Positions 15,524-59,426 of a stretch of 64,000 nucleotides of DNA are shown here, piece by piece. The notes below the pieces were generated by a model. The model did no database searches. It was given only the letters and a program-made list of their open reading frames with translations, and was not told the DNA's origin. How positions within the stretch are numbered: the first letter of the stretch is position 1; each line of letters begins with the position of its first letter. The translations under genes were made by a program, and so were the position numbers. The DNA comes from Adineta vaga (Eukaryota > Animalia > Rotifera), in assembly GCA_021613535.1 (NCBI GenBank), contig CP075493.1:62001-126000 (forward strand), read 5' to 3'.

Positions 15524-17008
15524 CTTCATGTTCATACTCCCAACCACACTGTAAAAAAAGGAGTTTACCGAACCGAAAAGGAATCTTCCCACTGATACAC
15601 GGGACGATCCTTTGTTGGTTTAGTAGAAAAAATGTACCAGGTAGAACCCTACTAGAAAATTTCAGAACGTAGGTTTCGTAGCAAAGGTTTAGTACGAAAC
15701 TTTTTGTTTCCATTAGAAAGAACATTCCGTACAGTAGGTGCCTTGCAGAACCTCTTCAGTTCATCTGAAAAAAGGTTTCTTACTAATCCATAGCTACGAA
15801 TCCTTTTCCGCATTGATCTTGCTTTTGTTTTAGTGAAATAACCCTTTTATAACGATCACATTACAAGTTCTGTATATAGACATTTCAGAATACATCCTTC
15901 AAATGCTTCTGTTGAAGGTCAACTCGCACTTTCACAAAAACTGATAAATTTTTGGCATCTGGATGAATGTTGACCATTCTAGTAACACCATTAACATGGA
16001 ATCTAAACAGCCTAAAAGACAGGATGTATTTTATATTATATTATCACTTATCTGATTGCCTGATGGACTCTTGACAAGTGGACATCTGCCGATATCAATA
16101 CTCGTATTTTTCGCTGAGCTCTCCCCGTTTGTTAAATGAACCAGTGGCAGCTATCAGTCGTTCGGTAGAAAGTTCACTGAACTCGAACACTCTTCACCAT
16201 GTCAGCGATCGTTTCACAGAGCTTACACCGAACCACTTTCAAGTATGGGAATACATTCATATATTTGAATAAATACTACGGAACCTTGAGCCACTATATG
16301 AAATCATCGATAGTTTCGTAAAAATTTTAGCAAGCCAGGAGTTAGTATACGGAATCATTGATCTTTTTTAATAAATCTCATCAAACCTCAGTCTACTGTA
16401 CAAAACTATTGGTAGTTTCGAGGAAGCTACACCGAATTATTTACAAGTATATGAAACTATTCATAGTTTAGCGTAAACTTTGGTAAACCTTGAACCACTG
16501 TGCTGAACCTTTGATCGTTTTATGTAAATTTTACCAAACCACGAGTGAGTTTACGAAACCCTGAACTGTTTCGCAAAAAATCTGTTCAACCCTGCACCAC
16601 AGTACAAAACCCTCGATGATTCCGCAGAAGCTATACCGAACTTATTTACAAGTATGAAACTACATATCGTTTTCTGTAATGAAAACGAAACTTTCATAGA
16701 AGTTACTGAATTGTAGAAGGTCTTGTACTAAAAGTACGAAACCGTTTTGAAACTGATAGAACTATGTTTTGTTCAGTATACGACGCACAAAATCAAAACT
16801 AGCTTTACGAAGCCAAATAATGCTCGGTATTTTGTGTGCGAAACCTTCGTTGTTCTTACTAAAGTGTTACTCGTTCTATATAAGTTGTGCTTTACCATTA
16901 TGGATTCAAACGAATCTATGAATTGTTCTTTGTACACAAACCGAACCTTCAGAGACACAATCGGATGATAAAAAGTTTCGCATGAATTATACTGAACCTT
17001 TTGAAGCG

Positions 17009-17338
17009 GGTGTGGGTGTGGATATCTATGTGGGTGTGGATGTGGGTATGGGTGTGGATTTATATGTGGGTGTATGTGGGGTGGCATTATTTCATGTATC
17101 TTAGAACCACCCACATCATTATCCTTACCCACACCTACATTCACATAGATATTCTCACCCACATAGGACCCACACTCATGCACACCTGCCTATTATCTCT
17201 TACCTTCCTCTTGGAGATGGGAGATAGAGATGCGGGATATGGGTCATCTCCTTAGGGAGATGTAGCATCTACCTAAGGATATGCGTATCCACAAGCGTCT
17301 CCCGCCATCCCCGATCTGCGGGATATGTGACACTACTC
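17009..17338. repeat. Inverted TGTGGG-like repeat blocks plus GGGATATG-type MITE remnant
   Basis: G-rich degenerate TGTGGG tract 17009-17083 facing a C-rich CCCACA tract 17107-17185. Confidence 0.6.
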
Positions 17339-22543: not shown

Positions 22544-22866
22544 TACCAGATTAAAGCCCATCAAACCACTGAAAATAGATTTTTGTCGGAGCTCTAAACG
22601 TTGTCTCTCGTCTCCGTTTAGGAAAGCAATAGTAACTGTTTGTTTTTTCCATACAAAATGTGGATCAACAACCAGACCATCTAATCGAGCATCAGTTAAA
22701 ATTTCAAGCATACGAATAATTATAGTATAGAAAAGAAGGGTGGGGTGTGGGTGTGGGTGGGTGTGAGTATTCTTTTCATTCGACACCCTCGCCCTCAATA
22801 TATCATTGTTCGATTTCAAGTGGTAATTATCGAGATGAAATATTGTTTTCTTTAAGAACATTCTAG

Positions 22867-26608: not shown

Positions 26609-28273
26609 TTAATTTTGTAAAAGAACTGTAACATTATTTGAAGTATAATTTGGAACAATTATATCCGGTTTATTATCATTGTTTATATCAATTACGATTA
26701 TGTAAAAGGGCGCATTACCGACATTGTAAGTCATTTCAGATGAAAAGGTACCATTTCCTTGATTATAAAGAATACTAATAGTATTAGAATCAGTATTTGC
26801 AGCAATAATATCTGGTTTATGATCTCCATTTAAATCAACAACTGATACAGAATGTGGTTGTGAACCAACATTGTAAGTAATTTGAGATGAAAAAGTACCA
26901 TTACCTTGATTATAAAGAATACTAGTAGTATTTGCACCATTATTTGAAGTAATAATATCCAATTTATTATCTTCATTTATGTCGACAACTGCTAATGAAT
27001 ATGGATTGGAACCAACAGCATATTTAACTGATGTAGAAAAATTGCCATTTCCTTTATTGAAAATAATATTTGTAGTGTTACTAGACGATATTGCAATAAT
27101 ATCAAGTTTTTTATCATCATTAATGTCAGCGACGACTAAATAACGTGGTAAATTACAAATTGTGTAATTTCCTTGAATATAAAATGTTCCATTGCCTAAA
27201 TTTAAGAGTATAACAGCAGTTCCAGCATTAAATGTAGTAACAATAATATCAGTTTTATTATCATTATTTATATCAGCAGTAGTTATTGAAAATGGTCTAT
27301 TATTTATTGTATAATTATTTTGAATATAAAAATTTCCATATCCTGTATTAAAATAAACAGTAATGATATCAATACTATTATCCATATTAACATCACATGT
27401 TGTTAAAAAAAAATGGAGATGCACCAGTTGGGTAAGTTATTTGTGTATTAAATGTTCCATTACCTTTATTATAAAGAATACTAAAGGTATTCGCCGCCTT
27501 ATTTGCCACAATTATATCTAATTGATTGTCATTATTAAGATCAGCAACGGCAATTGAATATGGTCCGCTTCCAACTGCATAAGTTGTTTGATTATAAAAT
27601 GCACCATTAAATGTCGTTGTTGATGTTGACGATGTTGATGTCGACGTAGTAATTGGTTCTATTATATGTAGAAATTAGACAAAAATAAGAAATATATATT
27701 GAAAATGAGTTTCTTTATCTATAAAGAATAGCTGCAATTCTTCGATAAAAACAAAAACTTCAAAGCACAAAACTGTGTTATTTTTTGTGCAAAATTCATA
27801 TGAGATTTCCTGAAAACTTTGTTTCTCTCTAATAGATTTCAGACTATAAAATTTCATCTGGAACTACGAGAATACTGGCAATAAATGATGAACACTAAGA
27901 TTTTTTCAATCTTTATCATTGTATTTAAACAAACCTGATGGTACTCGTGTTCCATCTTTGACTATCATAGTAATCATTCCTGTGCTTGCTTGTAAATCAG
28001 TACTTGGATCCAGTGTATCAGAAAAAATTGACATCTAGAAGTTGATAATTGAAAATTAATCGATTTGCATTGAGTATAATATAAACATTTTGTTTGACAT
28101 TGACGAACATTCGAAACAGTAACAGTAGAAAATGGTAAACATGTTGTTGTAGCACATTGAAATTGCCATCCATTCATAATAGACATTTTGAATGATGTCA
28201 TATCTTGTGTTTCTATTTGTTTCAATATAATAAACAGAATCAATATTGATATTTTCATGGAAATCATAATCAA
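26609..28273 (-). CDS. Secreted PAN/apple-like domain + FG-GAP/VCBS-repeat beta-propeller protein (2 exons; two 1-nt homopolymer frameshifts)
   Basis: Exon 1 (28273-27935): signal peptide plus C..TTC...C...C.....C.SINF....C. Intron 27934-27659 (GT..AG). Exon 2: Thr/Ser linker then ~7 repeats of D(I/L)NxDxxxDII..N..S..ISILYNQGNGTF. Frameshifts at A-runs ~28022 and ~27405. Confidence 0.85.
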
Positions 28274-39624: not shown

Positions 39625-41015
39625 ATTATGTCGCGAGGAAATCTCATATTTAATGAAATGTGAAGGTAGTATCTTATTCTCTTTTTCAGTTAGTGACTAG
39701 ATGATAAGATGACTCTTTAGTTACTTGATTTTTAATTGGAGAATATAATATATTGATTAGAAATCATTTTTGCCAGATGGCAGAGCGTTTCGATATGATA
39801 ACTTTTAATATATTATCATGCATGATTATTTGTTATTATACTAATTTTTTTTCAAAAAAATGAACTTAATCGCAAATCAGAAGCTGTGTTTTTCTCCATT
39901 ATAGTTTGATTAAAGACGCTAGTATATTTAAGTGTAATGCATATCTGTTCTTCCAAATACTTGATTAAGAATTCAAGACGATAGAAATAAAAATATTATG
40001 TCACAAATAAAATAACGTCAATTCTTTTTTAAATTACTAGTGTATATTATGAACTTGGATATTATTTAAATGGGCGCTTTAATCCACGCATTCATCGTAT
40101 ATTCAGATAGCGTTTACTACTCATTTAACGTATTTTCGAATTAAAAGCAATTTAGAATCCTACCAGAATCGGACACTTTTCATACAATACAGAATTTTGT
40201 GGATAAGAGCTTGATTAATATATATATATTATAATATTATAATTCAAGCGGGGGTCACATCATTTTCATTGAAAACCATTGAATGATCAATAGAGAGAAT
40301 CGTTTTCAACATGAATATTTGTAAGCGAATGTTCAAATCTTTCGAGTGATCACATACAATACACGTATTCGTCATCGAAATTCGTGACTGATCTCAATAT
40401 ACCATTCAGTCACTGGATGTGGCAATATTCTAAAATATTCCTTTACTTGGAATGCAGGTTAATGAAGAAAAATCTGAATCAATGATTACAGATGTAAAAA
40501 TTCTCAGAAATCTCTATTTATAAATCCGTAACCGTAGAGGAACCGGCGGGATACGGTCCGTATCCTGTCGTCCGGAAAAGATCAACCGATCCTTCTCCAG
40601 GAACCGGTCCGGATCCGGTGATCGTATCCAAAAACTCAATCCGCGCCAGGGATTCGCCTGGAACTGTACCGGAAACGGATACCGGGATAAGAAAACTCAA
40701 TCCACATCCGGGAATCGAACGGAACTGTACGGGAAACGGATGCCCGGATACGAAGTTGGAATCCTGCTGCGGGAAATCACCAGAAATTCCTGGATCCCGC
40801 CGGTTCCGACCGTACCAAATTGACATGGGAATATAACGTAATTCTCCTTATTGTTATTCAAAGTAAAATTGTTATCTTAATCTAGCAAATATATATATCA
40901 AATAAAAGTCTACATTATGCGACGATATGAATATATCATTCTATTGTAGATTTATAATATTTCATATTTAATCAATAATTACACTGTCATTATTCAAACT
41001 ATCGTACAACTCAAT

Positions 41016-42412
41016 ATGGAGACTTCACCAAATCAAACATTAAGTAAGATTTTAATCTATATTAAGAGTAGATTTTGAACGACAGATCAATACTAGTTAA
41101 AGTTCTCTGTCCATTTAATCATAACATGGATGTCTTTTCATATTCATCGTTTAATCCATTTTTAGACGCTCCAATCAGTAACTTTGATTATTTGTCGAGG
41201 CAAATAAAACATGAATTGTCTACTCATCCCTCGTCCTCATCATCCTTACCTACTTCTGAAATGCTACATATCCATGATTGTACAACTGTAACAATCAAAG
41301 AGAAACCATGTGAACCTCTTAGTTCTGTCGAAAGCACAAATCATCTGGATCCATTGTTTCTTAAATCTGGATTTGATGGTAAATTGTTTGTTCATCGATG
41401 ATATCATCTCACCGTTCTTTCATTTATTTAGATGCAATGAACATAGCATTACAACATAAATTCAATTTAACTATTCCATCACAAGATGAAGATCCATGCA
41501 AGAAGTTTCGACTTGAAAGGAAATGTTTTGCTATCACTTGTAGATCAAATTTCACCAGTGAGATATAGTTGACACATAATTATCAAATTAAAACTACTAA
41601 AATATTATCTTTTAAATAGAAGAAGATATCTCCCATCATATTCAAAATGAATTCAATGAAAACTTACAATATATTTGTATTGCACGTTCAGATAAACCAC
41701 AATTTTATGGGTTGCCTTCTATATATTACATTCAAATAAATCTTCATAAAAAGATCAACAAGAAGAGATTGTTTTTAAAAGAAATATCAGGTTAGAATAA
41801 TTTCATTTGATTTATATGAATGTTGAAGATATTTTTGAATAGCATTCTGTTAATAAACTGTTTTTAGGAATGAATTGTAATTATCAAGTAACACGTGATG
41901 ATCGAGCTTGGAATGCATTCCTGAAAAAAGGTTTCTCTTTTGATTAAAGTTTTTCTTCATTAAATAAAAGCTTATATATATATATATATATATGTTTATT
42001 CTAGTTGGCGCATATATTGAATATGGACAATTTCGATCAGTAAGATCACGTCTCGGTATAGAATCGACTCGGGCAGGTAGAAATAAATGTAAAAAATTGA
42101 GAAAAGGAACTTTGGTACAAAATCAAAAAATTGAAATGAAAACAATGCAATTAATTGTAAAACAACTCGTCGAGATCATCACCACGAATGTAAGAACATC
42201 TATTGATAATGCAATTCAACTTGCGACTCGATTCATACCACATGAATGTGAACATGAAAAACAAATGTAAGTATCAATAATTTTATTCTTTTAGATGTTT
42301 CAAGAAATTAACTCATGCTTTTGTCTATCATTAATAGGCTTCTAGAAAAACTGAACTCTGCTTACAAATTCTTACAAATCGATCCCATGCAATAACTATT
42401 TGATTTTCAATG
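41016..42412 (+). CDS. Rep-like (CRESS/geminivirus-type HUH) protein, catalytically degenerate, no helicase domain seen
   Basis: Spliced: KFRLERKCFAIT|..LQYICIA...SIYYIQINL..|CNYQVTRDDRAWNAFLKK|..YIEYGQFRS. Motif I is present; motif II HxH reads IYY and motif III YxxK reads FLKK. Confidence 0.7.
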
Positions 42413-42648
42413 AAACGGCCAGCAACGTGCATTTCGGGAACCATTTATCTGATATGCTTAAATGTACTCTGTTTGTCTCTTTCAAAATAATTCTGATTTT
42501 CTGAACATAATCTTGTATAGTCAATTGTTCTATAATAGAATTTGAAAAAAATGTAGATCTTGTATATATATATATATATCAACACTTTAATGAACATAAA
42601 TAATATGATTCTATTAAAATATTCTAGATTAAATTACAACACACACTA

Positions 42649-43020
42649 ATGGCATCTGATTTGTGGCGCTTAGTTCAGATTATGATAGATTCAGCCATCG
42701 AAGAATTTGTATTAACACCTGATGATAAAAGATCATCAACAACTGAAGATTCCAACGAACAAACAAGCAAATATGATCAACCATCAAATACTGATCGGCA
42801 ATTTTGTTTCATCATCTTCAACAATCCAAAATGGTCTCATATACTTCGACGACACAGAGAAAAGGTGCATGAAAACGAAATAAAGGCACTCAACTCCATG
42901 ATGTATATATTTTTTCTAGATTGCACAACAACGAGCACAAACTGTTACATCTGATCCATCAACTGCAAAGAGAAATGAAGAAAAAAAGGAGCTGTCTTTG
43001 GATGATCGTTTTACTGCGCA
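42649..43020 (+). CDS. Small co-oriented ORF of unknown function in the Terminon-like array
   Basis: 101-aa ORF with a probable short intron; no recognised motif. Confidence 0.3.
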
Positions 43021-43433
43021 ATTACGACAACTATTCGATGATTATATGCAGCATACAAAACGACGATATCCTATTAAATATTTTATTGATTTTACTGAAT
43101 GAAAGAAGTGAATTTTGTTCTAAATTGTCTTGAAAAGAGATATTGATATACATATATATCAAAATAAAAACTAATTGAAAACTCTATGTCGAAATCCATA
43201 TTCGGACATCATACATGTATAACTAAAGAAACATCTTTAAAATATTTCTGTTTCGTTTTGGATTAAAATAAAAATAAAATAAACAATACTGATTGAAGCA
43301 CCATTCATTCATCGTAATTTAATTTTAACAATGAGCGAATATTCATTCTATAAGATATATGTATATAGCACTATTGTACTGATTTAATAAGCTACTAACT
43401 TATTGTATTCGTTTTCTTTTTCAGTGGCGTGAT

Positions 43434-46400
43434 ATGCAATGGTGTGATAACATTTTTGATGTCATCGATGACAATGAAGATATATTGGAATATACACCAG
43501 AAGAATTAAATCGATACTATATGTCGGGTCAACTTCGGTCAAACTTTGAAGAAGATAATGACAATAACAATGAAGAAATCACGTCAGATATCGATACGGT
43601 ACTGTTCGCTGATCACACCGATGATAATCAAGTAAACAAAGTTTCAGTTATAAATTGTAGATAACTTATGGGTTTCTTAATGTTTAGTCAGCCACAATAA
43701 CAAATGCAGACAAGAAAATAGAAAACAAGGCGACACACAAGGAAGAAGACATTCTATCAGAAAAACTAAGTCAATTATCCACAGATAATAATTACGAGCA
43801 ACCTATTGCCAAATCTAATCGAAAAAGACGACGAAGTACATATAGAAGTCTGAATTTAGTTTCAAAAAAGATTAAATTTACTCAAAATAATGATACAAAG
43901 GATAAGAGTACAAATGATAATGTTAAAGAAGAGAAATCTGATGATGTACCAGCATATTTATCACTAACAAATATATCGTTTCTTCATGTCATTCAACAGA
44001 TTCAAAATACAGAAAATTCAATTGATATGAAAGATTTGCAAATAATAGCATTGTTAATGCATCGTATAACTGCTAATCGTATACAAAAACAGATTAACAG
44101 TGTCTATCTACGATCCGGTACTGGTAAATTAGATGATTCTAGTTTCGATTTAATCGAAATCGATCGACGAGTTTGGCCTAAAGAAGTTAAATCAGATATG
44201 CTAGCGAAAATTGCACAATCGAACATTACTACGGCAACAAAAATCAATTCAGATAGTGAACAACTCGATTTTGAAAATCTTGTCAATGAACGTCTACAAC
44301 AAATCAATGAAAAAATTGAACAATATACTCAACAACTCATTGACAAAAAGAATCATTTAATCGGATTTACATCATCAATAGAAAAGACAATCATTCAGTA
44401 TGTTCAACGCTATGGCATTATTCCACTTCAAATGAAAAGAGATCTAAAAATAGCTTTACTCAAACATGATTACAATACCATCATACTTCGAAGAAAATAT
44501 GAACAAGAAAATCCAAACGAATATCATGTAAGTCAAGTAGAGCTAGTCGAAGAATTTCATAGAACTAATATCAATATTCTTTTATCATTCAGACTGAAAT
44601 AGCCGAACAGCTATGTACTACAAAATATGAGTTGGAGAAATCGAAACGTGAATTAATTGAATTAAAACAAAGAGTTTTCTATCATAAACTCCCTGCTTTT
44701 GTCAAAGATATCGAACTATCACCACCATCGTCTACTATGTCTGCAACCACAACAGCATCCAACACTGTTCATAGTCAGTTATTCAACAAAAGAAACTTGA
44801 TCTTCTTGCTGCACATATAGCCAAAGCAGAAATCAAATACTATCAAGCAGACAGTAACTTCAATTCTGAATATACGAAAATGCTGAATAATCATCGAAAT
44901 CTTGTACGAAACAAAGGAATGACTTCAGCATTAAGCGATTTATTGGAAAAGCGACTCACCAATATCACTGATCGATTACGAGATATACATTACTATCGAA
45001 TCAATTTCTTTCTTCGAAGTTCTTATAGTGATTTGGAAAACATATACAAACAAATTGAGCCTCAAGAAAATACGAATATTAACGTGTTCTTTTCAAATGT
45101 AATTAGTTATACATTACACGGATTGAATCAAAAACAAATACAGTTACTTAGTCGAGGACCGACTTATGTTCCACCTTGTCAATCACGACTCAAATTTTCG
45201 TCGAAATCAACAGAGACAACCATAACAGATATTGTGAAAAAGCAATATGCACCATTGAAACATCAAATGGCTAGTCTCTTTTCAAAGCATCGTGTTAATA
45301 TTGCTTTATCATGGGATGTTCATTCAATTATTTGTCAAAAGTTTACTAATCTTTTTGCTATTTCAATTCCTCATAACATTCAACAACGTGCTACTGAAGA
45401 AATGAAATTAATTCAATCGATACGATCTTCTCTAAAAACAAACAATATGATAATACGACGAACAGCTGACAATCGAAATAGATTCTATGTAGGGAACAAG
45501 ATTGATTTCGAAGCAAAAGCAAACGAATTCATGTCGAAATCTAGTGATAAATATGAATTCACAGTGACCATTGGTAATGATCAAGGTAATAATGACGATC
45601 AAGAAAAACAGCCACAAAATCCACAATATTTTTTGAAGGGAAGAATTGAAGCAATCAATTTTGCATTAGAAACGTTGGGAAAACGCAAAGCATTAGATAA
45701 TGATACGATCAACAAGTTAATAATTGATCCAGAGAAAGTTAAATTACCTTATCTCTATTTCTTGCCAGATATTTCGAAAGTGAGTATCATCTCCAGTCAT
45801 CGTTTTTTTGCTTCTCACCTAACCTATCTCAAGATAATATTCATTTTTTTAATAGGAAAACGAATTGACACTTGTACCAACGATCGTAGCACATCAAAGT
45901 ATGACATCAAATATTGGTGAATACGTTGATAAACTGATTCGACCATTTGCTGAAGAAAAGATGAAACATTTGACATTTTTTAATGAAGCTGATTTCATGA
46001 AAAAATTAATGTATTATGCTTATGATCAACGTCGTTTAAAATCAACAAGTCTCTTTTGCACAATTCAAATTACCAATTTTTATTCATTGGATAAGCATGA
46101 TACAATGATTGATACAATTATAGCTTTCTTAAAAGATAAATCAGCAAATAACACAGTCAATAAAGTATCGATCAATACAATAAAAAATCTACTACAATTA
46201 TTTTTCTATCAAAATCTCTTTACATATGAAAATAAAATTTATATGATAAAAAATGGTAGTCCAAACACGCTATCATTAACTGAAACACTAGCTAATATAT
46301 ATTTATTTGAATGGCAAAAATCCATATTGAATCAATTCGAGTACGACCAAGAATTATTTGGACGGTTAGTACAATTCTTTTTTTTCTCTATCAATATAAT

Positions 46401-47135
46401 TCGCAATGATACTCGCTATCTTTTAGACATAAAGATCACATCTTTTTCACTTGGAATAAGTCTTATGACATGCTTTATTCTTATCTACAGTCCCTAAGAA
46501 AGCAACAACCTAGTGTTAATTTTAAAATATCGATTGGATCAAATGTACATTACTTCAATGCTCATATTGAAAATAGAAAAGGTGAACTATACAGTCGAGT
46601 GTATCATGATCCAATGATACCACGTTATACACTGCCTTATGTTGTTGGTCATTCAAAAGTACGACTTAGTGACTGGCTTCGATCAGCACTTCTTCGAGCT
46701 GTCTGTTATTGTTCATCTGTTGAAGATTTTCATCAAGAACGTCTCTATCTTGAACTCACTTACCTTGTCAATGGTTATTCATTTTTCTTTGTGGAAAGTC
46801 ACATACAAAATTTCTTCGATTATTTTCAAAGAGAATCAATACGATACTGTTTAGAACAATCAAATTATCATTCATTTCGTCGACAATGGTTTGATTTTTT
46901 TGAGTTGCAAAATCAACGTTCGGAAAAACTTCAACAATTGGATGATAAGAAGCAAGTGATTCGTTTCAACTATTTCTATGATTATGGCCCAAGATGTGAA
47001 TTTAATCAATATTTTCATGAATTATGGTCGGATTATTTTAAATCGAATCCAACATTATCCAATGAAAAGTTAAAAATCCTGCTGACAACCAAGCACACCC
47101 AGTCACTCAACGCATTATTATCTTTTCAAACATGA
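43434..47135 (+). CDS. Coiled-coil domain fused to Athena(PLE)-type reverse transcriptase, catalytically dead; one frameshift at ~44790
   Basis: GT-AG introns 43632-43687, 44528-44592, 45780-45855, 46365-46426 restore the frame. PLE motifs LLSRGPTYVPPCQ, RRTAD, LPYLYFLP, YTLPYVVGHS. Motif A reads FCTIQITNFY; motif C reads R|HKDHIFFTWN. No GIY-YIG domain follows. Confidence 0.85.
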
Positions 47136-47491
47136 GATTTTGTATACTATAGATTGTATTTATCTTTGACGACCAATTCAAATGTTTTCTTGGAGGCTAT
47201 GCACTTTGTAACATGATTAGAATTGATATTAATAAAATATGAATAAAATAGATCATGTGGTATACGCTGATCTTTTTCGTTTGAATTTTCTTTCAATCAC
47301 TTGTTTTCTATCATTTCTCTAATACTTTATGTTCGATTTCTTGTTTCAGACACATTTCTAGCGAATCTGGTCTGCGATCTATTAAGCTTCGAAAGCCTAT
47401 CAGTCTGCATTTCAATTCAAACAAAACTAAACATCCAAACAATCGAGTACTTCATCATTGAAACCATTTCAAATCTGTCGATAAAAACACA

Positions 47492-48296
47492 ATGTTACAA
47501 TCGAATTCAAATCTATCCAGTAATGAACGAAAACGACTCTTAAATATACAATTAAGTATTTTACCAGCATTCACTCCACTCAATGGCTGGCGAGTGTATT
47601 GTATTAATCAAACAACTGATCCATCATTATTGCACTATCTTATTGAATTAGCACGAAAAACTGTCAAATATACGATCGATACGGAACATGATTATTATAC
47701 ACATGAAGCAGCATTGATTCAAATTGAATTTATACGTCGACAATCAGTTATCCTTTTGATTGAAACATGCCATTTACCACAAGCATCAACTGTCACATTT
47801 TGGTTAATCAAGTCACTTTTTAAAATAATTTTTAATCCATCTAATGCCATTTACTCGTGGGGTGATGCTGTAAATGAATTAAGTCGATTTACACATTACA
47901 ATCTATTTTCCTGTTCAAGTCTTTATCAAATGAATAACATCGATATACAAAGTGGCTTCAAAATATGGTAAACTTTCATTCATGATTGTGGTCTCCATTT
48001 ATACGGAGATGATAATGAACTATGTACATGTCCACACCGACCAATAAAACATAAAAACAATCAATGGTCACTTCAGAAAGCAGTTGCTTATGCATTTCAT
48101 GAATTTCTAGATAAGAGTCGCTGTAAAAGTAAATGGCGCCAACGACTGACAAGCACGAATCAAATACGACAGAAAATTTGTAATGAATTAATTCGATATG
48201 CAGCTAATGATTGTTTAGCTGTCACCAAACTACAAATGCTAGTCGGTTTCAATTACACCAAAGAACAACTTGACATGTATAATCGAAACAAATGAT
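47492..48296 (+). pseudogene. DEDDy-type 3'-5' exonuclease with one in-frame stop (47969-47971)
   Basis: ExoI YTIDTE, ALIQIEF, YSWG...EL, IDIQ, then same frame CTCPHRP..WSLQKAVAYAFHEFLDKS...LIRYAANDCLAVTKL (ExoIII YxxxD). Confidence 0.85.
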
Positions 48297-48639
48297 TTAA
48301 ATAGTAAGCCATGTACATATAATAATATACGCATAGCTATCGAATTCTTTCTAGAAATAGCAACCATATGGAACATTGAAGAAATTTCGAACATATATGT
48401 TTTATCATTGTATTTGTGTTTTGTTGATGTTTTTGAAAAAGAAAAAATAGATGACTATAATATGTATTCGTCGTTGCGTTTTTTTATATTCATTTCTTTT
48501 ATTTTTAGATAGCATCCTGAGTATATCTATTTCTACGTTTCAGAAAAAAATGTCTAGTACAAGAGCAACGTACCAAGACGGAAGTAATTACAATTATGAC
48601 ATCTTTTATTTTGAATTGAAATAGCTCGAATTTTCTTTT

Positions 48640-49741
48640 TCTTTTCAGGTGATGACAAGCAACAACAACAGATCGAGCGGGTAAATATAGAAAACAAAGT
48701 TAATGTATGTCCAAAATGACTATTGTTTCTTACCAGCAATCGGATCCATTGTCAATCACCGACACTACGAAAACATTCATCGAAAACGATCAGCAAAAAT
48801 TCGTCAATAATCAACAAGTTGAAGGAATAAGCACAGATGTAAATTTAATTGATTTTTTGCGATGTTATATCCCACTTGAACGTTGTAAGGTAAAATATGT
48901 AATATTTTCGATTAGGAAGTAGATGAACTGATATCCATATTCTCTTCTCATTTGCATCATTACTTATAGGTGGAAAACTATGTGATTAATCATAGTGACA
49001 CTCAAAGTACAACTTTTCGAAAAGATGCACCACTAACCCAAGAAGAAGAAGATGGAAAAGAAACAACAAAAGAATTAAAACAAATAAGTCAATCAAATCA
49101 ATTCGCTACATCACGAACGGAATCAAATGAAGATAAATGATGTGGAACATTATTCGACTTCGTAGACTTTAATCCGTTGGAAAACTACATCTATATAGAT
49201 TTCTTTGAATAAACTTTTATATTAAACAAGAAGACGAAAGAGATATTACTTATCAAATAAACTAGTTTTCTTTCATTTTAGATCTGAACTCATATTGGTT
49301 TCATTTCCTGTAATCATCTTATTTCAACCGCTTTCGTTTTTAAATGGCTTCCAGCAGTAGCTCAACGTCAGTCTCAGACAAAATGAATTCAATCCGTAAG
49401 AAACTGTTACAAATTGCCATTGTGAAACTGACCTATATTTTGATTTATAACTAGATACGAACAAGCCATCAAAAATGATGGACATAGAGGATATTGTGAC
49501 ATCTCCAGTACAAACTGAACAATGTCCTAGTTTAGCATCATCAATAATACGGACTCCAAGTGCACCATTACCACGAGCTTCAGCATCAGTTGCACAAGAT
49601 CCCAGTCAAACACCGCGACGTCAAGTGGTCACATTTCAGTTACCAGGAGAAGTAGATCCAACGATTCAATTACCCAATATGTCATTACTATGGAGATCTA
49701 TCAAGAATATGTCTCTTGAAAAGAAACCTGGCCAAAAATGA
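48640..49741 (+). CDS. Two short spliced co-oriented ORFs, unknown function
   Basis: ORFs 48707-48922 and 49475-49741 with flanking GT/AG signals; low-complexity products. Confidence 0.3.
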
Positions 49742-50636
49742 CTCAGATGATTTCCATGTCAATTTAATTGTTTTTGAAACCTTTACTAGTAACTAGTGTA
49801 TCTTTTATTGGTTCATGTCTTTTTTCGTCAAAATCTCATTGTATTTCGAACTTTATCTAAATCTGTTCTTCGTCTACTACATATTATAAACATTCGAAAT
49901 ATCATCATTTTTCTTCTAACATATTTCACCTTTCTTTAACCATATGTTTATCGATTCTAGATATAAATATATCTTTATCAGCAATTGCCAAACAGCTCAA
50001 TCGTACAATTTATCAGTCATAAATGCATTTACTTGAACAAGTAAGTAGCTTGAACATATGTAGGACAAGTAGAATGAGATATCGTTATATTTGAAATTCT
50101 CATAAACGTAGATGGTGATCCATTTGACAAAAAATCTATGACATAGATTTCAATAATCTCAATAACAATACCATATCAAATACCTAGGTGAGTACTGGTC
50201 GGTTAGAATATCATAGAAGAATTTCCCAGATATATTTTATATATATTTATTTACATTAGATAAAATCATCGATCTACCTTGAACATTCAAAAGTTATTTG
50301 GATGATGACAGACAATTACCATGAAGCCATACGACTGAAGGGAAAATAAAACATCCAGCTTCATTTTATCTACTCCATTGGTGTAATCGTAACTGCTGTT
50401 TTGTGAAATGTAACCTAGTATGAATTCAAAATGTCTGTCGCAATCCATAGCACATTTATTTTTTTTTGAAAAGCTGGCAGTTTTCTTTCGACTTCTATAC
50501 AAAATTATCAAAAATCATCTGAACGATTTGATCTGTGTGAAAGACACGAACTAATGTCGTAGCTCTATCTTTTTATACACATTCGTTTAAAGTTCTTTTC
50601 GATCGAATTTATCTTGATTTGCTTTTCTTTTTTCAG

Positions 50637-52102
50637 ATTGAAAAGAATATTTTTAAATCGGACGATTTATTACCTTTGCATCACACACAAATGACAAAAG
50701 ATGGGTACCAATCGAACCGATTAACACAACACAATTCAGGAAGAAAATCTCATGGTAACCGGAGAATACAAAGATTCAGAAGAAAATGTCGTTCAAAAGG
50801 AATGACTAAAGAAGCAATCGAAAAATTAGTGGAAATTCAAAAGACAACTTATTCAATTCATCAAAACAATCGAAATCTAGAGAGAAAATATATGAATAGT
50901 TATTCCACAAGTTGTACTGATGATGATCTCAACATCGTATCGTCAATGTTGTTTGAAAACCATCAGGTATGACGATAATAGGTAACGAAATAAAGTTATA
51001 TAGTATTATTTTACATATAGACCTATCTTCATGAATATCAATCTAATAAAGAAAACATACCAACCGGATCAGCTGGTGGATCATTATCGATATTGACCCC
51101 AATAATATCAACAGGAACTTGGAGTTCACCACCATCTTCTAAAACATATCATAAGGCAGTTCACCGATATTCTTTATCTACAGATCATTGGAAACAAACA
51201 TCAATGCTAATACCTAACTATTATCAACTCTCTTTCTTTGAATTCAAAGATTTACTACTTAACATAATTCAAGCAAGCAATCGGCAGCAGATTCAAGAAC
51301 GAATAACAAATTTTACCGCACTACAAATCATACAACAGCGTGCTCAACTAATGTGCAAGGTTTCCCAATTAAGAATTGAAAATGATTATTGGAATTATAT
51401 CAGCAATATGGCGGACATACCCATTGTAATTTGGCTATCAGAAGTTTCTAAAGACGTCACTAGACAAAATTTCATTAATTGGGATCATACTAAAACAAAA
51501 AACAATATTCAACAACGTCAACAAATGATTCAAGATAAATTGCAACAAGCTGAATATAATTTGAATAATCATTTACACCAACAGCTAGATCCGTTATCTT
51601 TTCAAGCGAAAACAATAGCGCTTCCAGATCATCCAATGACTATTATTTCCGATGCTCTGGCTCATCTGGTAGAAAATGGTCTACATTATTTTCGTATGAA
51701 CTTTGAACAAAAGAAAATCTTATTAATGTTTGATACTAATGATGCACAACTTGTCAAATCATTCTATGATTTAAATCCAACATCGCAACAGGTTTCTATT
51801 CATTTATTACATAGTTTTTATTTTATTTTATTCTTGTTTTTCATTATATCTTAGATTTCGACTGCCCAAAAACTTTGGCGAACTAAAATAAAACAATGTC
51901 AAAAAACCGTTTGTCATCAAAAGAAAAACTATCCATTGCCAATGTTATATGATAGTACAATCAATACAGAGAGCCAAAAGCAGCAAAATGAAGTACCTAA
52001 AATGGGATCATTTACTCCGACCATGTCTACTATTGTGGAAGCTCGTCTATGCAATATGGAAGAGCGCATTCATCAAATGATACATTTTTCTTCTACTTTT
52101 TA
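50637..52102 (+). CDS. Terminon-type coiled-coil ORF with basic N-terminal motif (partly degraded)
   Basis: GRKSHGNRRIQRFRRKCRSKGM; PNY; Q-rich heptads; FEQKKILLMFD..D..LVKSFYDLNPT..Q|I..AQKLW. Ends at an intron position similar to the CC part at 44027-44527. Confidence 0.7.
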
Positions 52103-52959
52103 ACATAAACCTTTCTTCTCGTAATATGCATCTACACCGAATATTGTGTCCTCTATATAGATGGGGGAAAACTGTCAATGAAAGTTTGAATGTATAGAAG
52201 TTTTCATTTCTTTCCCTTATTTGAATTGGTGTACAACTTCAACATGTAAACTAAACTTCTCTCTCTGTTCTAGATATAATTAACATTTAACATTTTGTAT
52301 ATTCTGGAATCAATTATCGAAATCTACACCAAGGAACGCTTTTTACGTACCACTAGTATTGAAAAAAGTGTGAAAACGAAAAGAAAACTTTCTATTATCC
52401 ATCTCCATTTCAAATTATATCATCAAGGAATCAACCATTTTAATACATATCTCATAGTTTCAAACATCTCAAAAGTAAGTGTAAGCAGGAAAAGTAAACT
52501 ACATACATAATCATATACTCATACCTAAATATTTTCAAGACATCTTATCTTATTACGCACTCCCTTGACTAACAATAAGATTTTCCCAACATGCTCAGCT
52601 CCAACTTACATCTACTACACTGAATATGAGACTATAAAATTTATTTTATCATATACCAAACATAGAGGTAAGTATAGCTTCGGTTTTATATGCAACGAAC
52701 GTTACACTACTTCTTCTCTTATGAGCTTTCAGTCACATTTCAGCCTTAAAATATTAAAAATTCTCTTTTGAGTTTAGACACAAATTTTCAGCGATCTGAA
52801 CAGCTGGATCTTCAACTAAGGTGAGGCATATAGTTATAACATTTTCAATCCATACAAACCCCTGTAAATGTAAAAATTGTTTTTGTTTCGATTTAATTTA
52901 TTTTGATATTTCTTTCAGATAGCATTTCTCAGCAAGTTCACAGATACCATTTTGAAGAA

Positions 52960-55900
52960 CTTGGGGCTAAGCTGGATGCTACCAAGCGGGTCCACAGGTT
53001 GCGGATAGTAGAACGGCCATTAGTATGATGGTTAGCTGCGAATAAGATCAAGCGATTGATCAAATAAACAGTCCCGGACAATACTCAGCCTTCTTGCCAG
53101 CAGGGTGTGGTGGGGTTTTGTTTGGAACCAAAACTCTTATAAAATGCCACAGAAACCCAAAGACGACAGGATGACAGGGCGAGTATAGGCCGCCAGAAAC
53201 AAGGTTCCTCCCGAACCGAGATTTCATAAGCCTTATCCTGGGCCGATGGAGCTCGCTAGCCAGGACTAGCAAATTCATCAAATGGAGAAAACCATTCCAA
53301 ACCGGCGGAAGGCAAGGGGAAACCACCGCTGTACACTCCCAAGCACAACATGATAAACGTCAATACTTCCAGTCAAGATAACAGCGTGAAGGGGGTTCTC
53401 AGAGAGAACAACTCGCTCGGTAGAGGTGGTCATGTACGACAGGTGACCCTCGATCGTCAACAGGCTACTGTCCCAATCAAGATCTCACTCAAAATAGGAA
53501 CATGGAATGTAAGAACTATGTTTCAGAAAGGAAAATTAGACAATATAAAGAACGAAATGGAACGGATGAAAATAAATGCGTTAGGCTTATCTGAAGTCAG
53601 ATGGCTGGGTGCTGGATCTTTTACAACTGATAACTTTCTTTTATTATACTCTGGAGGAGACAAACACGAGAAAGGAGTAGGAATGCTTCTTGACAAAGAA
53701 ACCTCCAAGAGTTTGCAAGGCTTTTGGGCGATTTCAGACAGAGTTCTTCTTGTAAAACTCCACAGCAAACCCTTTAACACTTCATTAATTCAATGTTACG
53801 CACCAACAGCCGATTATGATGATGACGCAATCACGAGCTTCTATGAAGATCTAGACAAAGCCTACAAACAATGTAAGTCTGATGATATCATTTACGTAAT
53901 GGGTGACTTCAATGCAAAAGTGAGAGATAAAAGAATTGGCAATACAGTAGGACCTTTCGGTTTAGGAAACAAAAATGACAGAGGAGATAACTTAATAACT
54001 TGGTGCCAATCACATAATCTCGTAATCACAAACACGTGGTTCAAAAATCACCCACGTAGACTATGGACATGGCGAAGCCCAGGAGATCGGGCAAGAAATC
54101 AAATAGATTACATTATGGTCCCTCATCGATTCAGGAATTCAATCATTTTCTCTAAAGCATTTCCTGGAGCGGACTGTGGTAGCGACCATGTCCCAGTTAT
54201 TAGCAAAATTCGAGTAAAACTAAAAAGAATAAATCATCCACAGAAAAATATAAAGCTTCAAGTTCACATTCTGAAAACTGATGCAGATCTGAAAGAAAAA
54301 TTCCGCATAAAAGTGCAGAATCGTTTTGAAGCACTAGATCAAATAACAGAAACCGAGGTATTGTGGGAACAGATAAAATCATCCATACTAACATCTGCTG
54401 AAGAAATAATTCCAAAAACTCAATTAAAGAAAAAGAAAAGATGGATGACTAATGAAATCTTACAACTAATGGAGCAAAGACGACTGAAGAAGTCAAACCC
54501 CCACGAATACCAATTGATAGACAAATCAATCAAAAAGAAATGTTCAGAGGCAAAAGAGAAATGGTTGAACGAACAATGTTCAGAGATCGAAAGTAAGTTG
54601 AGTGTAAACACCAAATTCGCTCATCAAAAGATCAACGAAATAACAGGAAAATCAAGATGCACCAGTTCAGGTTGTATCAAATCGAAAAATGGAACCGTTC
54701 TAATGGAAAAAGGTGACATACTGAACAGGTGGTCAGAATATATAGAGGAACTCTTCGATGATAATAGAGCTTCTAAGCCTAACATAAAGAAAAATATAGA
54801 AGGGCCTCCAATAATGAAAGATGAAGTAAGACTGGCCATAAAATCAATGAAAACAAACAAAGCAACAGGGCCAGATGGAATATCCATCGAAATGATTCAA
54901 TGTCTCGATGAATTAGGTGTAGATGTCATGACAAAACTAATAAACAAAATATATGATACGGGTGAAATTCCGGAAGATCTAACAAAATCAGTATTCATAG
55001 CACTTCCAAAAAAGCCTGGAGCTACTGAATGTGAATTACATCGCACAATCAGCCTCATGAGTCATATCGCAAAAGTTTTGCTTAAGATTCTGATAATGCG
55101 TATGAAAAATAAAATCACGCCAGAAATCGCAAAAGAACAATATGGCTTTATGCCTGACAAAGGCACCAGAAACGCAATCTTCATCCTTCGAATGATAATC
55201 GAAAGATCAATTGAAGTCAAACATGACTTATACCTATGTTTCCTTGACTACACAAAAGCTTTTGATAAAGTCAAACACGACAGTCTATTCCAAATTTTGG
55301 AGAAACTCGATATTGATGGCAAAGATCTACGATTAATTCGAAATCTTTATTGGGATCAAAAAGCCGCCATGAGAGTAAACAATGATATAAGTGAATACAC
55401 AAACATCAAGAGAGGTGTCAGACAAGGATGTGTTCTATCTTCAGATCTCTTCAACATCTACAGTGAAATGATACTCAGAAACCTAGAAGATGTTGAAGGC
55501 GTAAAAATTGGAGGATACAACTGTAACAACCTAAGATATGCAGAGACACTGTATTGAAGCACCGAAGCAGAGTTGCAGAAGATGATTAATATAGTCTCGA
55601 CAGAGAGTACAAAAATGGGCCTATCACTTAATGTCAAGAAATCAGAATGCATGAGTATTTCAAAGAATAAAATTTCACCGACATGCAATGTAAATATATA
55701 TGGTGCACAAATCAAACAAGTCACTCACTTCAACTACTTGGGATCAATCATAACCTCAGATGGCCGATGTGATGAAGATATCAAAAAGAGAATCGCTCTC
55801 TCCAAACAAGCTTTCCAAAAGATGAGTCCGATTTTGAAAAACAGATCCATATCGATCAATACTAAAACAAGAGTTCTCAAATGTTATGTATGGTCGATTC

Positions 55901-56326
55901 TTTTGTATGGATCTGAATGCTGGACAATCAATAAAGAGATGGAAAAACGCTTAGAGGCTACTGAGATGTGGTTTCTCAGAAGGATGCTCAATGTACCTTG
56001 GACTGCTAGAGAAACCAATGCGTCAATATTAAAAAGAACGAAATCGAAAAGATTTTTAATCAATACCATCCGTTATAGGCAACTGAAATTCCTTGGCCAC
56101 ATAATCCGTAAAGGTTGCATGGAACATCTGGTATTGAGTGGAAAAATCAATGGAAAGAAAGATAAAGGCCGACCAAGAATCAAATATCTTGAAAACATGA
56201 ACCTTTGGATTGAAAAACAGGGTTACACGAAAATAGGCTTTCTTCACGCAGCTCAAGATCGGAAAAATTCGCGTATCATGTTAGCCAACGTCTGTAACAG
56301 ATAAGGCACCTATCTGATCTGATCTG
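52960..56326 (+). mobile_element. Near full-length RTE-clade non-LTR retrotransposon, 11-bp TSD
   Basis: TSD ATTTTGAAGAA at 52949-52959 and 56327-56337; 3' tail (ATCTG)3; RTE-type 5' UTR (GGTTGCGGATAG...TAGCTGCGAATA). Confidence 0.95.
53350..56304 (+). pseudogene. RTE APE-RT polyprotein broken at the YADD motif
   Basis: IGTWNVRT, YAPT, MGDFNAKV, QIDYI, GSDH (APE); KATGPDGI, FLDYTKAFD, GVRQGCVLS, NNLRYA-(lesion, TGA)-...YLGS. ORFs 53350-55557 and 55573-56304 are in the same frame. Confidence 0.93.
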
Positions 56327-56439
56327 ATTTTGAAGAAAGTTAATTAAAAATGAATTCTATTTCACCAATCAATCGATTTATTCAAATGAATTCATGTCAT
56401 TTCTACAGAAAAAAGAATACTCAAGATTGTTGGCTTGGA

Positions 56440-56754
56440 CCCAGGTCGAAAAATCCGAGCCGGATCCGGCCGGAACCAGAACATTTCGGTCATTTCATGG
56501 AAGCAGGATTCCGACCCGGATATTTTCGAACTTTTCCACTCGCTTCTGACTAACTTCCAGTAAGTTCCAGTCGGAAAACGACTGGAATTCGCCAGAACAG
56601 TCCGAGAAATTCCGATCGGAATACTGCTTCCACTCTCCTTTGTTTTCCGGTTGGAACCGTTTGGAACTAGCTAGAACCGTCCGGAATATCCTCGGAAAGG
56701 CGTGATTTCTGGCAGGTTCCTTTCGGATCCGGAGGCCGGAACGTCCGTCCTGGG
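56440..56754. mobile_element. CMC-like MITE, CCCAGG termini, 2-bp TSD (GA)
   Basis: GA|CCCAGGTCGAA...GTCCGTCCTGGG|GA; CCGGA-rich interior. Confidence 0.88.
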
Positions 56755-57946
56755 GATACAAATATATTTCATGTGATCGTTTACAAGAATATCTACTTAA
56801 AATGATTAAACCATGTACCAATGTGGTTAGTGATAACATAGTAGTAACAACAATGACGGTACCTCAATTACCTAGTACGTATTGGTTTGATAATCTTATT
56901 TTGAGTATGGCAAACAATTCAGACCTCGATGTCTAGATTACAAAAAGAAATTTCATTCTGTCTCTTTTTCTACCTTTTTATTTGCCAAATAGATCAATTA
57001 CAAGCTACAATTTCATTCGATTTCCATTCGCCATACATCATTGTTATTTTAATTCTATCTATGATTCTATTCATAAGTCTACTTGTATTTTTGACAACTA
57101 TTATCATTATTTATACTATGAATTATTGTCGAAAAAACCGACGACGTCAAGTATGTATGCCGGAGACAAATCAATACATCCGTGAGTACTTTTATGTCCC
57201 TTATTCACTCATTTCTTTTCGTGAATCGTTTTTCGATATAACGGTGATTCCTACTCTTAGGAACAGAAGGAAGAGAAAAACAAAACTATTTAAATCCATT
57301 ACCAATAATCAATAACAAAAAAGAAACAGAGATCGGAAAAAATAATCAAGGTCTTCCGATAAATCATAATACGCAACGACAATCAACAACTTATGATCAT
57401 AATCTACAGTCCGTAAGTTCTATGACCAAAATCTACTTTACCTTTAATTCAATTTCATTCATTTTTCTTGCTCCTCATATTTCAGTCGCCACTTTACTAT
57501 GAATGCCTATAAATTAGAAACTTCAACCAACCTCGATTCCAGTGCAAGCGGAACAAGCATTGGACGCCAACAAATAGACGAATATATTCCTTTCGATTAC
57601 CGCCCAAGGCATTACTTCTTTTTTTGCATATATCTTTCAGTTTTGTACTTCTTTATTGTCAATTTCATCTACTTAATTATTGCAATTCTCGCGTATTGCT
57701 TCCAATTGAACATTCTCATCTCTATACTTTGACATTTTACTTCAGCGGATCAATTTCTGTAAAATATTTCGTAGCTAATATAAACTGATGCTATCTTTTC
57801 CACTAAAAACTAATATCACAAATCTACCCTATCCGTAGACCAAGAACTAACAACGCACAGAAATACATTAATATAAATAGATACATTTCTGAATTCGAGA
57901 TGAAGCCAGAGTAGAACCAGCATTAGAATTGATTGTAGACTAATTA

Positions 57947-57996
57947 TGCCACCTGAAGATAGACCCTTTAGCAAGGTCGAAACTATAGTCGTGGTA
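57947..57996 (+). ncRNA. Minimal type I hammerhead ribozyme (Penelope-like element type)
   Basis: Stem I TGCCAC/GTGGTA; core CTGAAGA (57953-59); stem II GACC..GGTC; GAAA (57979-82); palindromic stem III CTATAG; GTC cleavage triplet (cut after 57990). Two extra nt (TA) before stem II. Confidence 0.8.
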
Positions 57997-58014
57997 GCTA
58001 TATCTTTATATATA

Positions 58015-58038
58015 CACACCCACACCCACCCACCCACC
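58015..58038 (-). repeat. Short interstitial telomeric-type repeat (TGTGGG/TGGG on minus strand)
   Basis: CACACCCACACCCACCCACCCACC at the junction between the hammerhead and the Gypsy pol. Confidence 0.65.
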
Positions 58039-58384
58039 GCTCCTGTTGTTACTCGTTCCAAAACTCGTGCACATCCTCCTACCACCACCTCTGATCCGAT
58101 TCCACCATCTGTTGGTGCTTTTGCTCCAGCAGACCCTTCGCATTCTTTCTCCTCTAGCCCACCCATCCTCTCCCCTGACACGTCGTTAGATCTCAGTTTT
58201 TCTCGTATTCAACACGAACAATACTCTGATTCCAGTAGTCTTTCCCTCATTAATCAGTTGCGTCAACAACCTTCTCACTCACAATACGTCTTACACGACG
58301 ATACACTCTTCCGCCTCGTTTCTCGTTTTCCCTCTGATCTTCCCTCCTCGCATTCCTTACCTTCCTAAATCTCTCATTCCCTTA

Positions 58385-59426
58385 GTGCTTCGTCTTTATC
58401 ATGATCATCCGCTTAGTGGTCATTTTGGTGTACATCGCACCTTTTTGCGCATTCGCGATAAATTCTGGTGGCCCAACATGCACTCTAGCATTCAAAACTA
58501 CATTGCCTACTGCTCTTCTTGTGCTCGTCATAATATCCTCCGCACTAAGACTCCCGGCCATCTTCATTCGATTGATCCACCATTTGGCGTGTTTCAACTG
58601 TTGCACCTCGATTTCTGGGGTCCTGTTCTAACCCCTTCTGCTTCTGGTAATCGTTACGTCATTGTTCTTACTGATAACTTGTCAAAATACGTCATTGCAC
58701 AGGCACTTCCAGATTGTACTGCTCGCTCCGCTGCTCAGTTCCTCATCGATCGTTTTATTCTCGTGCATGGTGCTCCTGAACGTCTCTTAACTGATAACGG
58801 TACACACTTTAACAATACTCTTCTGCGCGCCGTTACTTCTTCCATGCAGATCCCTCACACCTTTTCTGTCGCCTACCATCCACAAACCAATGGACAAGTT
58901 GAGCGGTTTAACGCTACGTTTGCCGCTCAGCTTGCCAAATACCGTCATCCCGATCGTCATGATTGGGATCTCTACCTTCCCTCTATTGTCTATGCTTACA
59001 ATACTTGTGTTCATTCTACCACTCAGCTCATGCCTTACGAAGTCCCTTTTGACCGCCGTCCAAAAAGTCCTTTTGATGCAGCTTCTCCCACTATTAATCT
59101 CCCTCCTCTCCATTCCTTTTACCCGTATCTACAACAAACTCGTCGTCTTCTTCTTTCTGCAGCTCGCAAAAATATCATTCGTCATCAGTTACACTGGCAA
59201 CAGCGCTATAATCGTAACCGTCGTAATCCCTCTTATCATGTCGGTGATCTTGTTTATGTTCATGTTGCTGGTGGTCGTACTAAATTTACTTCTCGCCGCT
59301 CTGGTACCTATCCAATTCTCGATATTTCCGGCACGCAAAATTATCTTGTACAGGATCCTTCCTCTGGTTCCACTGGTGGTGTCATGTTAGTCAACTCCAT
59401 CCCTTTGTAGACCGTCTTTCTCCGTA
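58385..59426 (+). CDS. Gypsy integrase (H2C2 zinc-binding, DDE core, GPY/F-like end), frameshifted at both ends
   Basis: YHDHPLSGHFG..CSSC; LHLDFWGP; LLTDNGTHF; YHPQTNGQVERFN; alternative-frame C-terminus WCHVSQLHPF. Confidence 0.92.

Follow-up and report, generated by a model that had tools for sequence, protein, structure and literature searches.

A subtelomeric Terminon-type unit of Adineta vaga carrying a reverse transcriptase-like gene with substituted catalytic residues

The unit and its copies at chromosome ends

A Terminon-type unit of the bdelloid rotifer Adineta vaga was analysed in a stretch of 64,000 nucleotides of contig CP075493.1 (assembly GCA_021613535.1, positions 62,001 to 126,000; hereafter the window), which is subtelomeric and lies 62-126 kb from a chromosome end; its part 33434-57135 is 100% identical to CP075493.1:95434-119135. 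The unit occupies 40830..58038 on the plus strand and measures 17.2 kb here, or about 13.5 kb when two secondary insertions, an RTE-type non-LTR (long terminal repeat) retrotransposon and a miniature inverted-repeat transposable element (MITE), are subtracted. From 5′ to 3′ it holds a first gene, a small conserved open reading frame (ORF), a gene for a coiled-coil (CC) protein with a reverse transcriptase (RT)-like domain, a DEDDy-type exonuclease gene, three small ORFs, another CC region and a small membrane-protein gene, and it closes with a hammerhead motif and C-rich telomeric repeats. An earlier, sequence-only reading had placed a Terminon-like unit at 40900-58038. Its borders are nearly exact (here about 40830-58038), and of the components that it named the RT-like gene of Athena type, the ORFs for CC, DEDDy and transmembrane (TM) proteins, the hammerhead and the telomeric repeats were borne out. 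All genes of the unit lie on the plus strand according to the gene calls, as that reading had stated; its further statement that all are spliced does not apply to the exonuclease gene. No endonuclease or other nuclease domain was recognised in any ORF of the unit in Pfam scans, and no second RT-like gene was found in it outside the RTE. Terminons are giant Athena-containing retroelements of bdelloid rotifers, and both the class and its component list have been published for A. vaga (Arkhipova, Yushenova and Rodriguez 2017, summarised in PMC6431247 and PMC5408684), in keeping with the assignment of the unit to a class already described.

A second full-length copy, L010 (CP075497.1:54038-79793), is 92.7% identical to the window at the nucleotide level, and the whole unit is collinear with it, the corresponding parts of the window being 40830-52959, 56321-56439 and 56754-58029. 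The comparison of the two sets a sharp 5′ border at about 40830, upstream of which the flanks are unrelated, and the flanks differ on both sides of the unit. On CP075494.1 a 5′-truncated copy, L001, which is free of the RTE, shows 71-82% nucleotide identity over 44040-57527. At the opposite end of CP075493.1 another copy, L006, keeps the C-terminus of the RT-like gene, the exonuclease, the small ORFs and the gene that follows; L001, L006 and a further locus, L007, are all truncated copies. The gene order is the same in L001, L006 and L010, so the order proposed from the window recurs elsewhere, and the genes are not single-copy syntenic host genes; co-linear copies with different flanks occur at other places. 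Neither of the outcomes that the sequence-only reading had named as refuting it came about. All copies are subtelomeric, at 54-330 kb from chromosome ends.

The 3′ end of L010 consists of the hammerhead and (ACACCC)3, followed by a mini-unit of 460 bp and then by about 100 bp of telomeric repeats. This mini-unit (20930-21470 of the L010 locus) has only its terminal 100 nt, the hammerhead module, in common with the unit studied here, which suggests that different families share one terminal cis-element.

The substituted RT-like gene and the active RT gene of related units

The RT-like gene, here called CC-dRT (dRT for the RT-like part), lies at 43434..47135 (+) and encodes a basic and coiled-coil N-terminus fused to an RT-like domain of the Penelope-like element (PLE)/Athena type, in which catalytic residues are substituted. 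The splice model joins six exons (43434-43631, 43688-44527, 44593-44700, 44793-45779, 45856-46364 and 46427-47132) into a reading frame of 3348 nt whose 1116 codons include no internal stop, and its GT-AG introns measure 56-92 nt. Bdelloid proteins of 1046-1313 aa could be aligned over their full length by tblastn, giving five to six blocks that span 43434-47132. The window protein has Q instead of D in motif A, and its motif C reads HKDH, so that two of the three catalytic aspartates are missing; with no recognisable endonuclease beside it, the unit holds no catalytically intact RT or endonuclease, just as had been claimed from the sequence. Pfam scans of single ORFs or exons of the gene gave no match, nor did a phmmer search of the PDB with the RT exon.

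An HMMER scan of 1.8 billion representative proteins with the fingers/palm exon returned 294 matches at E<=1e-3. The nearer ones carry K, T, H, R, S, E or Q at the position of the motif A aspartate of active RTs, GSP instead of the GGAMGS-type motif B, and R-Y/H-K-D-Q instead of R-Y-I-D-D in motif C, and the more distant ones have the canonical RT residues. A tree of 81 rows is divided by a split with 100% support in the Shimodaira-Hasegawa-like approximate likelihood ratio test (SH-aLRT). On one side 49 of the 50 rows are without the motif A aspartate, and within these the window dRT sits in a clade of 16 rows with 96% support; the other side comprises 20 canonical rows and a further clade, in which 10 of 11 rows are without the aspartate. 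The dRT clade is sister to active, endonuclease (EN)-less bdelloid RTs, the placement that the sequence-only reading had expected from an RT phylogeny, here obtained with a tree that holds no named Athena reference. Proteins of the dRT type correspond to the precomputed family PF26215.

The ratio of non-synonymous to synonymous substitution rates (dN/dS) of the dRT is 0.16-0.36 per exon relative to L001, at dS values of 0.38-0.58 and with the minimum in the palm/fingers exon, and 0.30 relative to L010. The comparison suggested earlier as a check on the dead RT thus points to purifying selection. For the RT part of a homologue, P0045, which is 47-50% identical, AlphaFold predicted a structure with a mean pLDDT (predicted local distance difference test) of 82. 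The best structural matches of this model are telomerase catalytic subunits (TERT; E 1e-9 to 1e-7), with the RTs of retrons and group II introns next, and Prp8 is also among the matches. Telomerase has its nearest relatives in the Penelope-like RTs. Judged from these comparisons, the dRT is an old, selected and bdelloid-wide family of paralogues, present in Adineta and Rotaria with about 50 representatives, and not a product of decay. The loss of catalytic residues described earlier is hence confirmed, but it is not peculiar to this unit.

The public gene models of the RT-like gene are wrong in both full-length copies. I4U23_000017 (717 aa), which represents the window dRT, skips large parts of it, and I4U23_027323 (1279 aa; L010 10001-15756) is mis-spliced and runs dRT, exonuclease and one small ORF together. 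In Rotaria sp. Silwood2 one locus (L005, 1131-13630) contains three head-to-tail modules of small ORF and CC-dRT, the first of them truncated. An A. steineri locus (L003, 16942-18828) shows a second, independent clade of substituted RT-like genes with H, N, S, Y or R in motif A and D-E or D-K in motif C. This second substituted clade is nearer to the active RTs, and an active RT may share its unit with two dead paralogues of different kinds.

In three other loci, L003, L004 and L008, the dRT lies upstream of an active Athena-type CC-RT gene. In the Rotaria sp. Silwood2 locus L004 a small ORF precedes the CC-dRT, and further small ORFs separate the latter from a CC region with an attached RT of canonical motifs, behind which come the hammerhead and (ACACCC)3; in A. 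steineri (L003) the dRT comes first, then the other substituted RT-like gene and last a canonical CC-RT. In a locus from a metagenome bdelloid (L008) a hammerhead cluster stands between an upstream canonical RT and the next unit, which begins past the cluster with CC-dRT and continues with the exonuclease and CC-RT.

At the corresponding end of the window unit, 50619..52103 (+) encodes the N-terminal basic and coiled-coil part of such an active Athena-type CC-RT gene, with the RT domain absent. Residues 22-55 of an active RT protein, P0088, match window 50742-50843 with 59% identity over 34 residues, and window 51210-51794 matches residues 103-290 of the active-RT-fused CC region of L004 with E 9e-19; no trace of an RT remnant was found after this region of the window in the comparison with the L004 CC region. 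What had been read as a second CC gene does contain a coiled coil, but by these matches it is the N-terminal remnant of an active Athena-type CC-RT gene. The unit is therefore a deletion derivative. The RT-less layout is common to the window, L001 and L010, whose flanks differ, and L006 retains the active CC-RT gene as far as RT motif 1; together these point to a family of deletion derivatives that was copied to several chromosome ends.

The 3′ terminus, the remaining genes and the insertions

A minimal type I hammerhead motif lies at 57947..57999 (+), with its predicted cleavage site after GUC at 57990, and reverse-complement, C-rich telomeric repeats follow at 58013..58038 (+), which agrees with the earlier observation that the run ends in these two features; the same arrangement is found in L010. 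The core (CUGANGA, GAAA and the cleavage triplet) and helices I-III are present, and the core pattern matches once in the 64 kb against 0.04 matches expected. Against Rfam model RF00163 the motif gave a full-length match of 21.3 bits (E 0.011 in a search of 401 nt), and a scan of the whole window at the gathering level returned nothing. When the 12 base pairs of the three helices were followed through eight copies, 95.7% were paired, as compared with 11-51% in slid controls, and 5 of the 12 pairs had changed on both sides. A covariance model trained on the hammerhead copies of the window, L010 and Rotaria finds exactly one match in the window, at 70 bits, and untrained matches of 42-51 bits in L008, where they stand at unit borders. 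The same motif closes L010 and recurs at the ends of the Rotaria units, and ACACCC-type repeats follow each copy within about 15 nt or less. All three A. vaga hammerheads (window 57960-57961; L010 20859-20860 and 21317-21318) differ from the Rotaria copies in two additional bases between helix II and the CUGANGA core.

The C-rich repeats abut the 5′-truncated pol fragment of an LTR retrotransposon. This fragment (58039-59410) starts abruptly at the telomeric repeats and has integrase zinc-binding and core domains at 58385-59410. Such an abrupt start is as expected for a break inside an LTR element that was capped by telomerase, the Terminon cDNA then being primed from the new end; capping of a break followed by priming from the new end is the published model for Athena and Terminons (PMC6431247). 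The window contains three tracts of telomeric hexamers, and the hexamer pattern matches 19 times against 1.0 expected. The two other tracts (17005-17080 and 22738-22767) are G-rich on the plus strand, opposite in orientation to that of the unit. They are preceded by degenerate, hammerhead-stem-like pieces on the minus strand, at which the covariance model was silent at E<=1. The two tracts look like fossils of earlier terminal additions that are now inverted relative to the unit studied.

Among the remaining genes the small conserved ORF (42649..43102, +; 132 aa with one intron, by gene call) is the most constrained of the unit, with a dN/dS of 0.13 relative to L010. It is homologous to a 138-aa gene directly upstream of the dRT in the Rotaria loci L004 and L005, and is thus kept from Adineta to Rotaria. 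The DEDDy-type 3′-5′ exonuclease gene (47492..48295, +) is unspliced and has a dN/dS of 0.24-0.33. The paralogue in L001, 79% identical, scores 26.1 bits against PF01612 (cut-off 23.6), and the second piece of the window gene matches the same family at E 6e-4. Four other copies have an uninterrupted ORF of 269-270 aa with DxE and Yx3D motifs and a Cys/His cluster; the window copy is interrupted by an in-frame TAA at 47969-47971, which falls after the Exo II region and adjoins a 6-bp gap relative to three intact paralogues, L001 and L006 among them. PF01612 supports the identification as a DEDDy exonuclease, although the copy first read is itself truncated by a stop codon. No match to the PDB was obtained by phmmer for the DEDDy pieces or the paralogue, an exact look-up of the truncated ORF found no record, and an AlphaFold model of the paralogue made from six sequences reached a pLDDT of 42, too poor for use of the fold.

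The first gene, called at 41016..42403 (+), is represented by an NCBI model of 329 aa; our own reading gives exons at about 41126-41378, 41433-41557, 41620-41790, 41868-41930 and 42005-42267 and a short last exon. It occupies the same place in L010 and is accordingly part of the unit. It is open in both full-length copies, with a dN/dS of 0.54, and exon 3 shows one non-synonymous and three synonymous changes. Searched exon by exon, it had no relatives in Pfam, the PDB, the protein database, plasmids (tblastn), IMG/VR or two metagenome scans; phmmer searches of the PDB with three of its exons gave no match, and no Pfam entry is on record for the annotated 329-aa product. The sequence-only reading had called it Rep-like, and none of these searches supported the label; short stretches may resemble geminivirus Rep motifs with substituted HUH and Tyr residues. 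The three small ORFs (48704..49741, +) are collinear in L001, L006 and L010, have dN/dS values of 0.36-1.08 and are without a Pfam match. The membrane-protein gene (56929..57732, +) has at least two exons, is collinear in L001 and L010 and is weakly constrained (dN/dS 0.4-0.9); Kyte-Doolittle windows of 19 residues exceed 1.8 in both of its pieces. Pfam scans of the CC, TM and small ORFs gave no match.

The secondary RTE-type insertion (52958..56326, +), with its APE and RVT_1 domains, is foreign to the unit and is bordered by a target duplication of 9 bp. The MITE-like insertion (56440..56753, strand not assigned) is about 314 bp long; it ends in inverted hexamers, and the empty site shows a duplication of 2 bp. 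The borders of both were set from the empty sites in L010, and both are absent from L001 also, consistent with the view that they arrived later. The YADD box of the RTE is destroyed and an in-frame stop follows at about 55555, so the inserted RTE is, from its sequence, predicted to be likewise catalytically dead; short GATCT-type repeats stand at its end. With the RTE, the MITE and the stop codon in the exonuclease gene, the window copy of the unit is probably no longer functional. A second MITE-like element (40539-40807) lies 25 bp upstream of the 5′ end of the unit. Both MITE-like elements are GC-rich and CCGG-rich with terminal inverted repeats and are dissimilar by blastn, and no further copy of the one at 56440-56753 was found in the window. 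Elsewhere in the window are a near-perfect tandem array (7795-8737; 13.9 copies of a 68-nt unit, 99% matches), a hAT transposase ORF (19836-21803, minus strand) that encodes zf-BED and hAT dimerisation domains, and, within an AT-rich stretch, an exon with many FG-GAP repeats (26609-27424, minus strand). The hAT transposase, the LTR integrase fragment, the RTE and the telomeric tracts fit the surroundings of a bdelloid subtelomere.

Probable mobilisation in trans and its alternatives

Copies that share exact termini but differ in their flanks, the truncation of some at the 5′ end, and junctions with telomeric repeats are best read together as the marks of a non-autonomous family that is mobilised in trans, and we hold with good confidence that the region is one copy of such a Terminon/Athena family of A. 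vaga. Mobilisation in trans was the reading proposed from the sequence, and an RT-less architecture in at least three copies with different flanks agrees with it. The unit would be transcribed as one long RNA, whose C-rich 3′ tract would pair with the G-rich telomeric overhang, a pairing that is the published model for Athena and Terminons. The synthesis of cDNA would be carried out by an active Athena RT from another element, so that the unit is probably copied by an enzyme that it does not encode. The dRT may act non-catalytically, most likely either by RNA or ribonucleoprotein (RNP) binding of its own transcript or as a partner subunit of the active RT; this role as RNP component or RT partner is one that we only infer.

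Several readings other than mobilisation in trans were weighed. That the cluster is a domesticated, host-maintained subtelomeric locus, an immobile Terminon remnant co-opted in telomere biology, would agree with the purifying selection on three of the genes (dead RT, small ORF and exonuclease), with the conservation of the family across bdelloid genera and with a proposal of Terminon co-option in the literature (PMC7943196). Against such a locus stand the diverged copies, several in each genome, whose termini are exactly those of an element, whose flanks differ and some of which are 5′-truncated, together with the lesions of the window copy itself (stop codon, RTE and MITE) and the other full-length copy, L010, which ends on telomeric repeats like an inserted element, and domestication is regarded as unlikely. 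Copies could also have arisen by segmental duplication or gene conversion between subtelomeres instead of by retrotransposition, all of them being subtelomeric and subtelomeres commonly swapping segments. The window and L010 cease to be similar precisely at the 5′ end of the element and at the terminal repeats, however, L001 is 5′-truncated as from incomplete reverse transcription, and the window copy adjoins a broken LTR element with a telomeric cap, which leaves this origin very improbable.

Two further alternatives concern the RT-like gene. The unit might be the decayed copy of a once-autonomous element in which the aspartates were lost by random damage after insertion, and the window copy is indeed damaged elsewhere, by the DEDDy stop and the transposable element (TE) insertions. 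The same substitutions nevertheless define a clade of about 50 representative proteins from Adineta and Rotaria, the dRT ORF is intact over its 1116 codons, and its low dN/dS is lowest in the palm/fingers exon; random decay is the least probable of the explanations considered, with hardly any weight left to it. Conversely, the substituted RT might still polymerise through a non-canonical active site and the unit be autonomous, given that one motif C aspartate is often retained, that an RT/TERT-like fold is confidently predicted and that selection on the palm exon is strong. Two-metal catalysis in right-hand polymerases depends on the carboxylates of motifs A and C. Within the clade the motif A residue may freely be K, T, H, R, S, E or Q, a latitude that would be unexpected of a catalytic residue, and three other species keep an active RT beside the dead one, so that residual catalysis is given little more credence than random decay.

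Some points weigh against the preferred reading. The two full-length copies are 7% apart, so that activity has not been recent, and the analysis found no autonomous element of A. vaga that shares the 3′ terminus and could serve as partner. The hammerhead score lies below the RF00163 gathering score of 34, and with this score and the two extra bases in the A. vaga copies self-cleavage is to be taken as putative. Membership of Athena was set by the architecture and by relatedness to active bdelloid EN-less PLE-type RTs, without a named Athena reference, and values of dN/dS below 1 in the genes of the unit are compatible with selection at the level of the host. The reading as a whole is drawn from genome sequence.

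With known Terminons the unit shares the host species, the subtelomeric position, the co-oriented intron-containing ORFs (RT-like, CC, DEDDy, TM and possibly Rep), the freedom from endonuclease, the 3′ hammerhead directly before (ACACCC)n, the 5′-truncated copies and the head-to-tail mini-units. In reviews, however, the Athena RT is the principal polymerising component of Terminons, usually near the 3′ end (PMC6431247, PMC5408684), and according to one review RT activity is always present in the units. The unit studied here differs from this in having no catalytically competent RT, in carrying a substituted RT paralogue and in the reduction of its 3′-proximal CC-RT gene to the CC part. Athena EN-deficient PLEs (Gladyshev and Arkhipova 2007, cited in PMC8557442) have in common with it the CC and PLE-type RT architecture, the TERT-like fold and the attachment of telomeric repeats via a C-rich 3′ tract beside a hammerhead. 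Canonical Athena elements are compact, at about 4-6 kb, with an active RT, whereas in the RT-like protein studied here the aspartate of motif A and one of those in motif C are missing. The HeT-A element of Drosophila telomeres (PMC5537684) is likewise telomere-specific, encodes non-catalytic proteins and has no RT of its own, the RT being thought to be supplied in trans, but it belongs to an unrelated non-LTR class of poly(A) type without a hammerhead, telomerase repeats or a dead-RT gene. The RT-like domain of Prp8 offers a parallel for an RT fold kept for nucleic-acid or RNP scaffolding after the loss of catalysis; Prp8 is a single-copy host protein, while the dRT is encoded in a mobile element, often beside an active paralogue. 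Substituted RT paralogues or RT-less units are not mentioned in PMC6431247, PMC5408684, PMC8557442, PMC7943196 or PMC5537684, and literature searches returned no account of a catalytically dead Athena RT; an earlier description in the original Terminon work is possible.

It is tentatively proposed, as a possibility with the odds rather against it, that Terminons carry a dedicated, ancient and selected non-catalytic RT paralogue which is needed for their own propagation, so much so that RT-less derivatives preserve it intact although they borrow catalysis in trans. Such a pseudo-RT might bind the hammerhead/telomeric 3′ end of the element RNA or might be a structural partner of the active Athena RT. 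To our knowledge Terminons are the most complex retroelements. The loci compared here suggest that one or two RT paralogues which are catalytically dead but under selection are a routine part of their units, and that a derivative family with the dead copy only has spread between chromosome ends. For annotation it follows that RT-based censuses of TEs would count dRT genes as RTs, and that the current A. vaga models of these genes are mis-spliced or fused. The unit offers a concrete example, open to experiment, of how an element may turn a polymerase fold to non-catalytic use and how mobilisation in trans may proceed at telomeres, and, if the proposal of a dedicated pseudo-RT is true, bdelloid Terminons would encode a dead polymerase with a selected function that is an evolutionary neighbour of telomerase.

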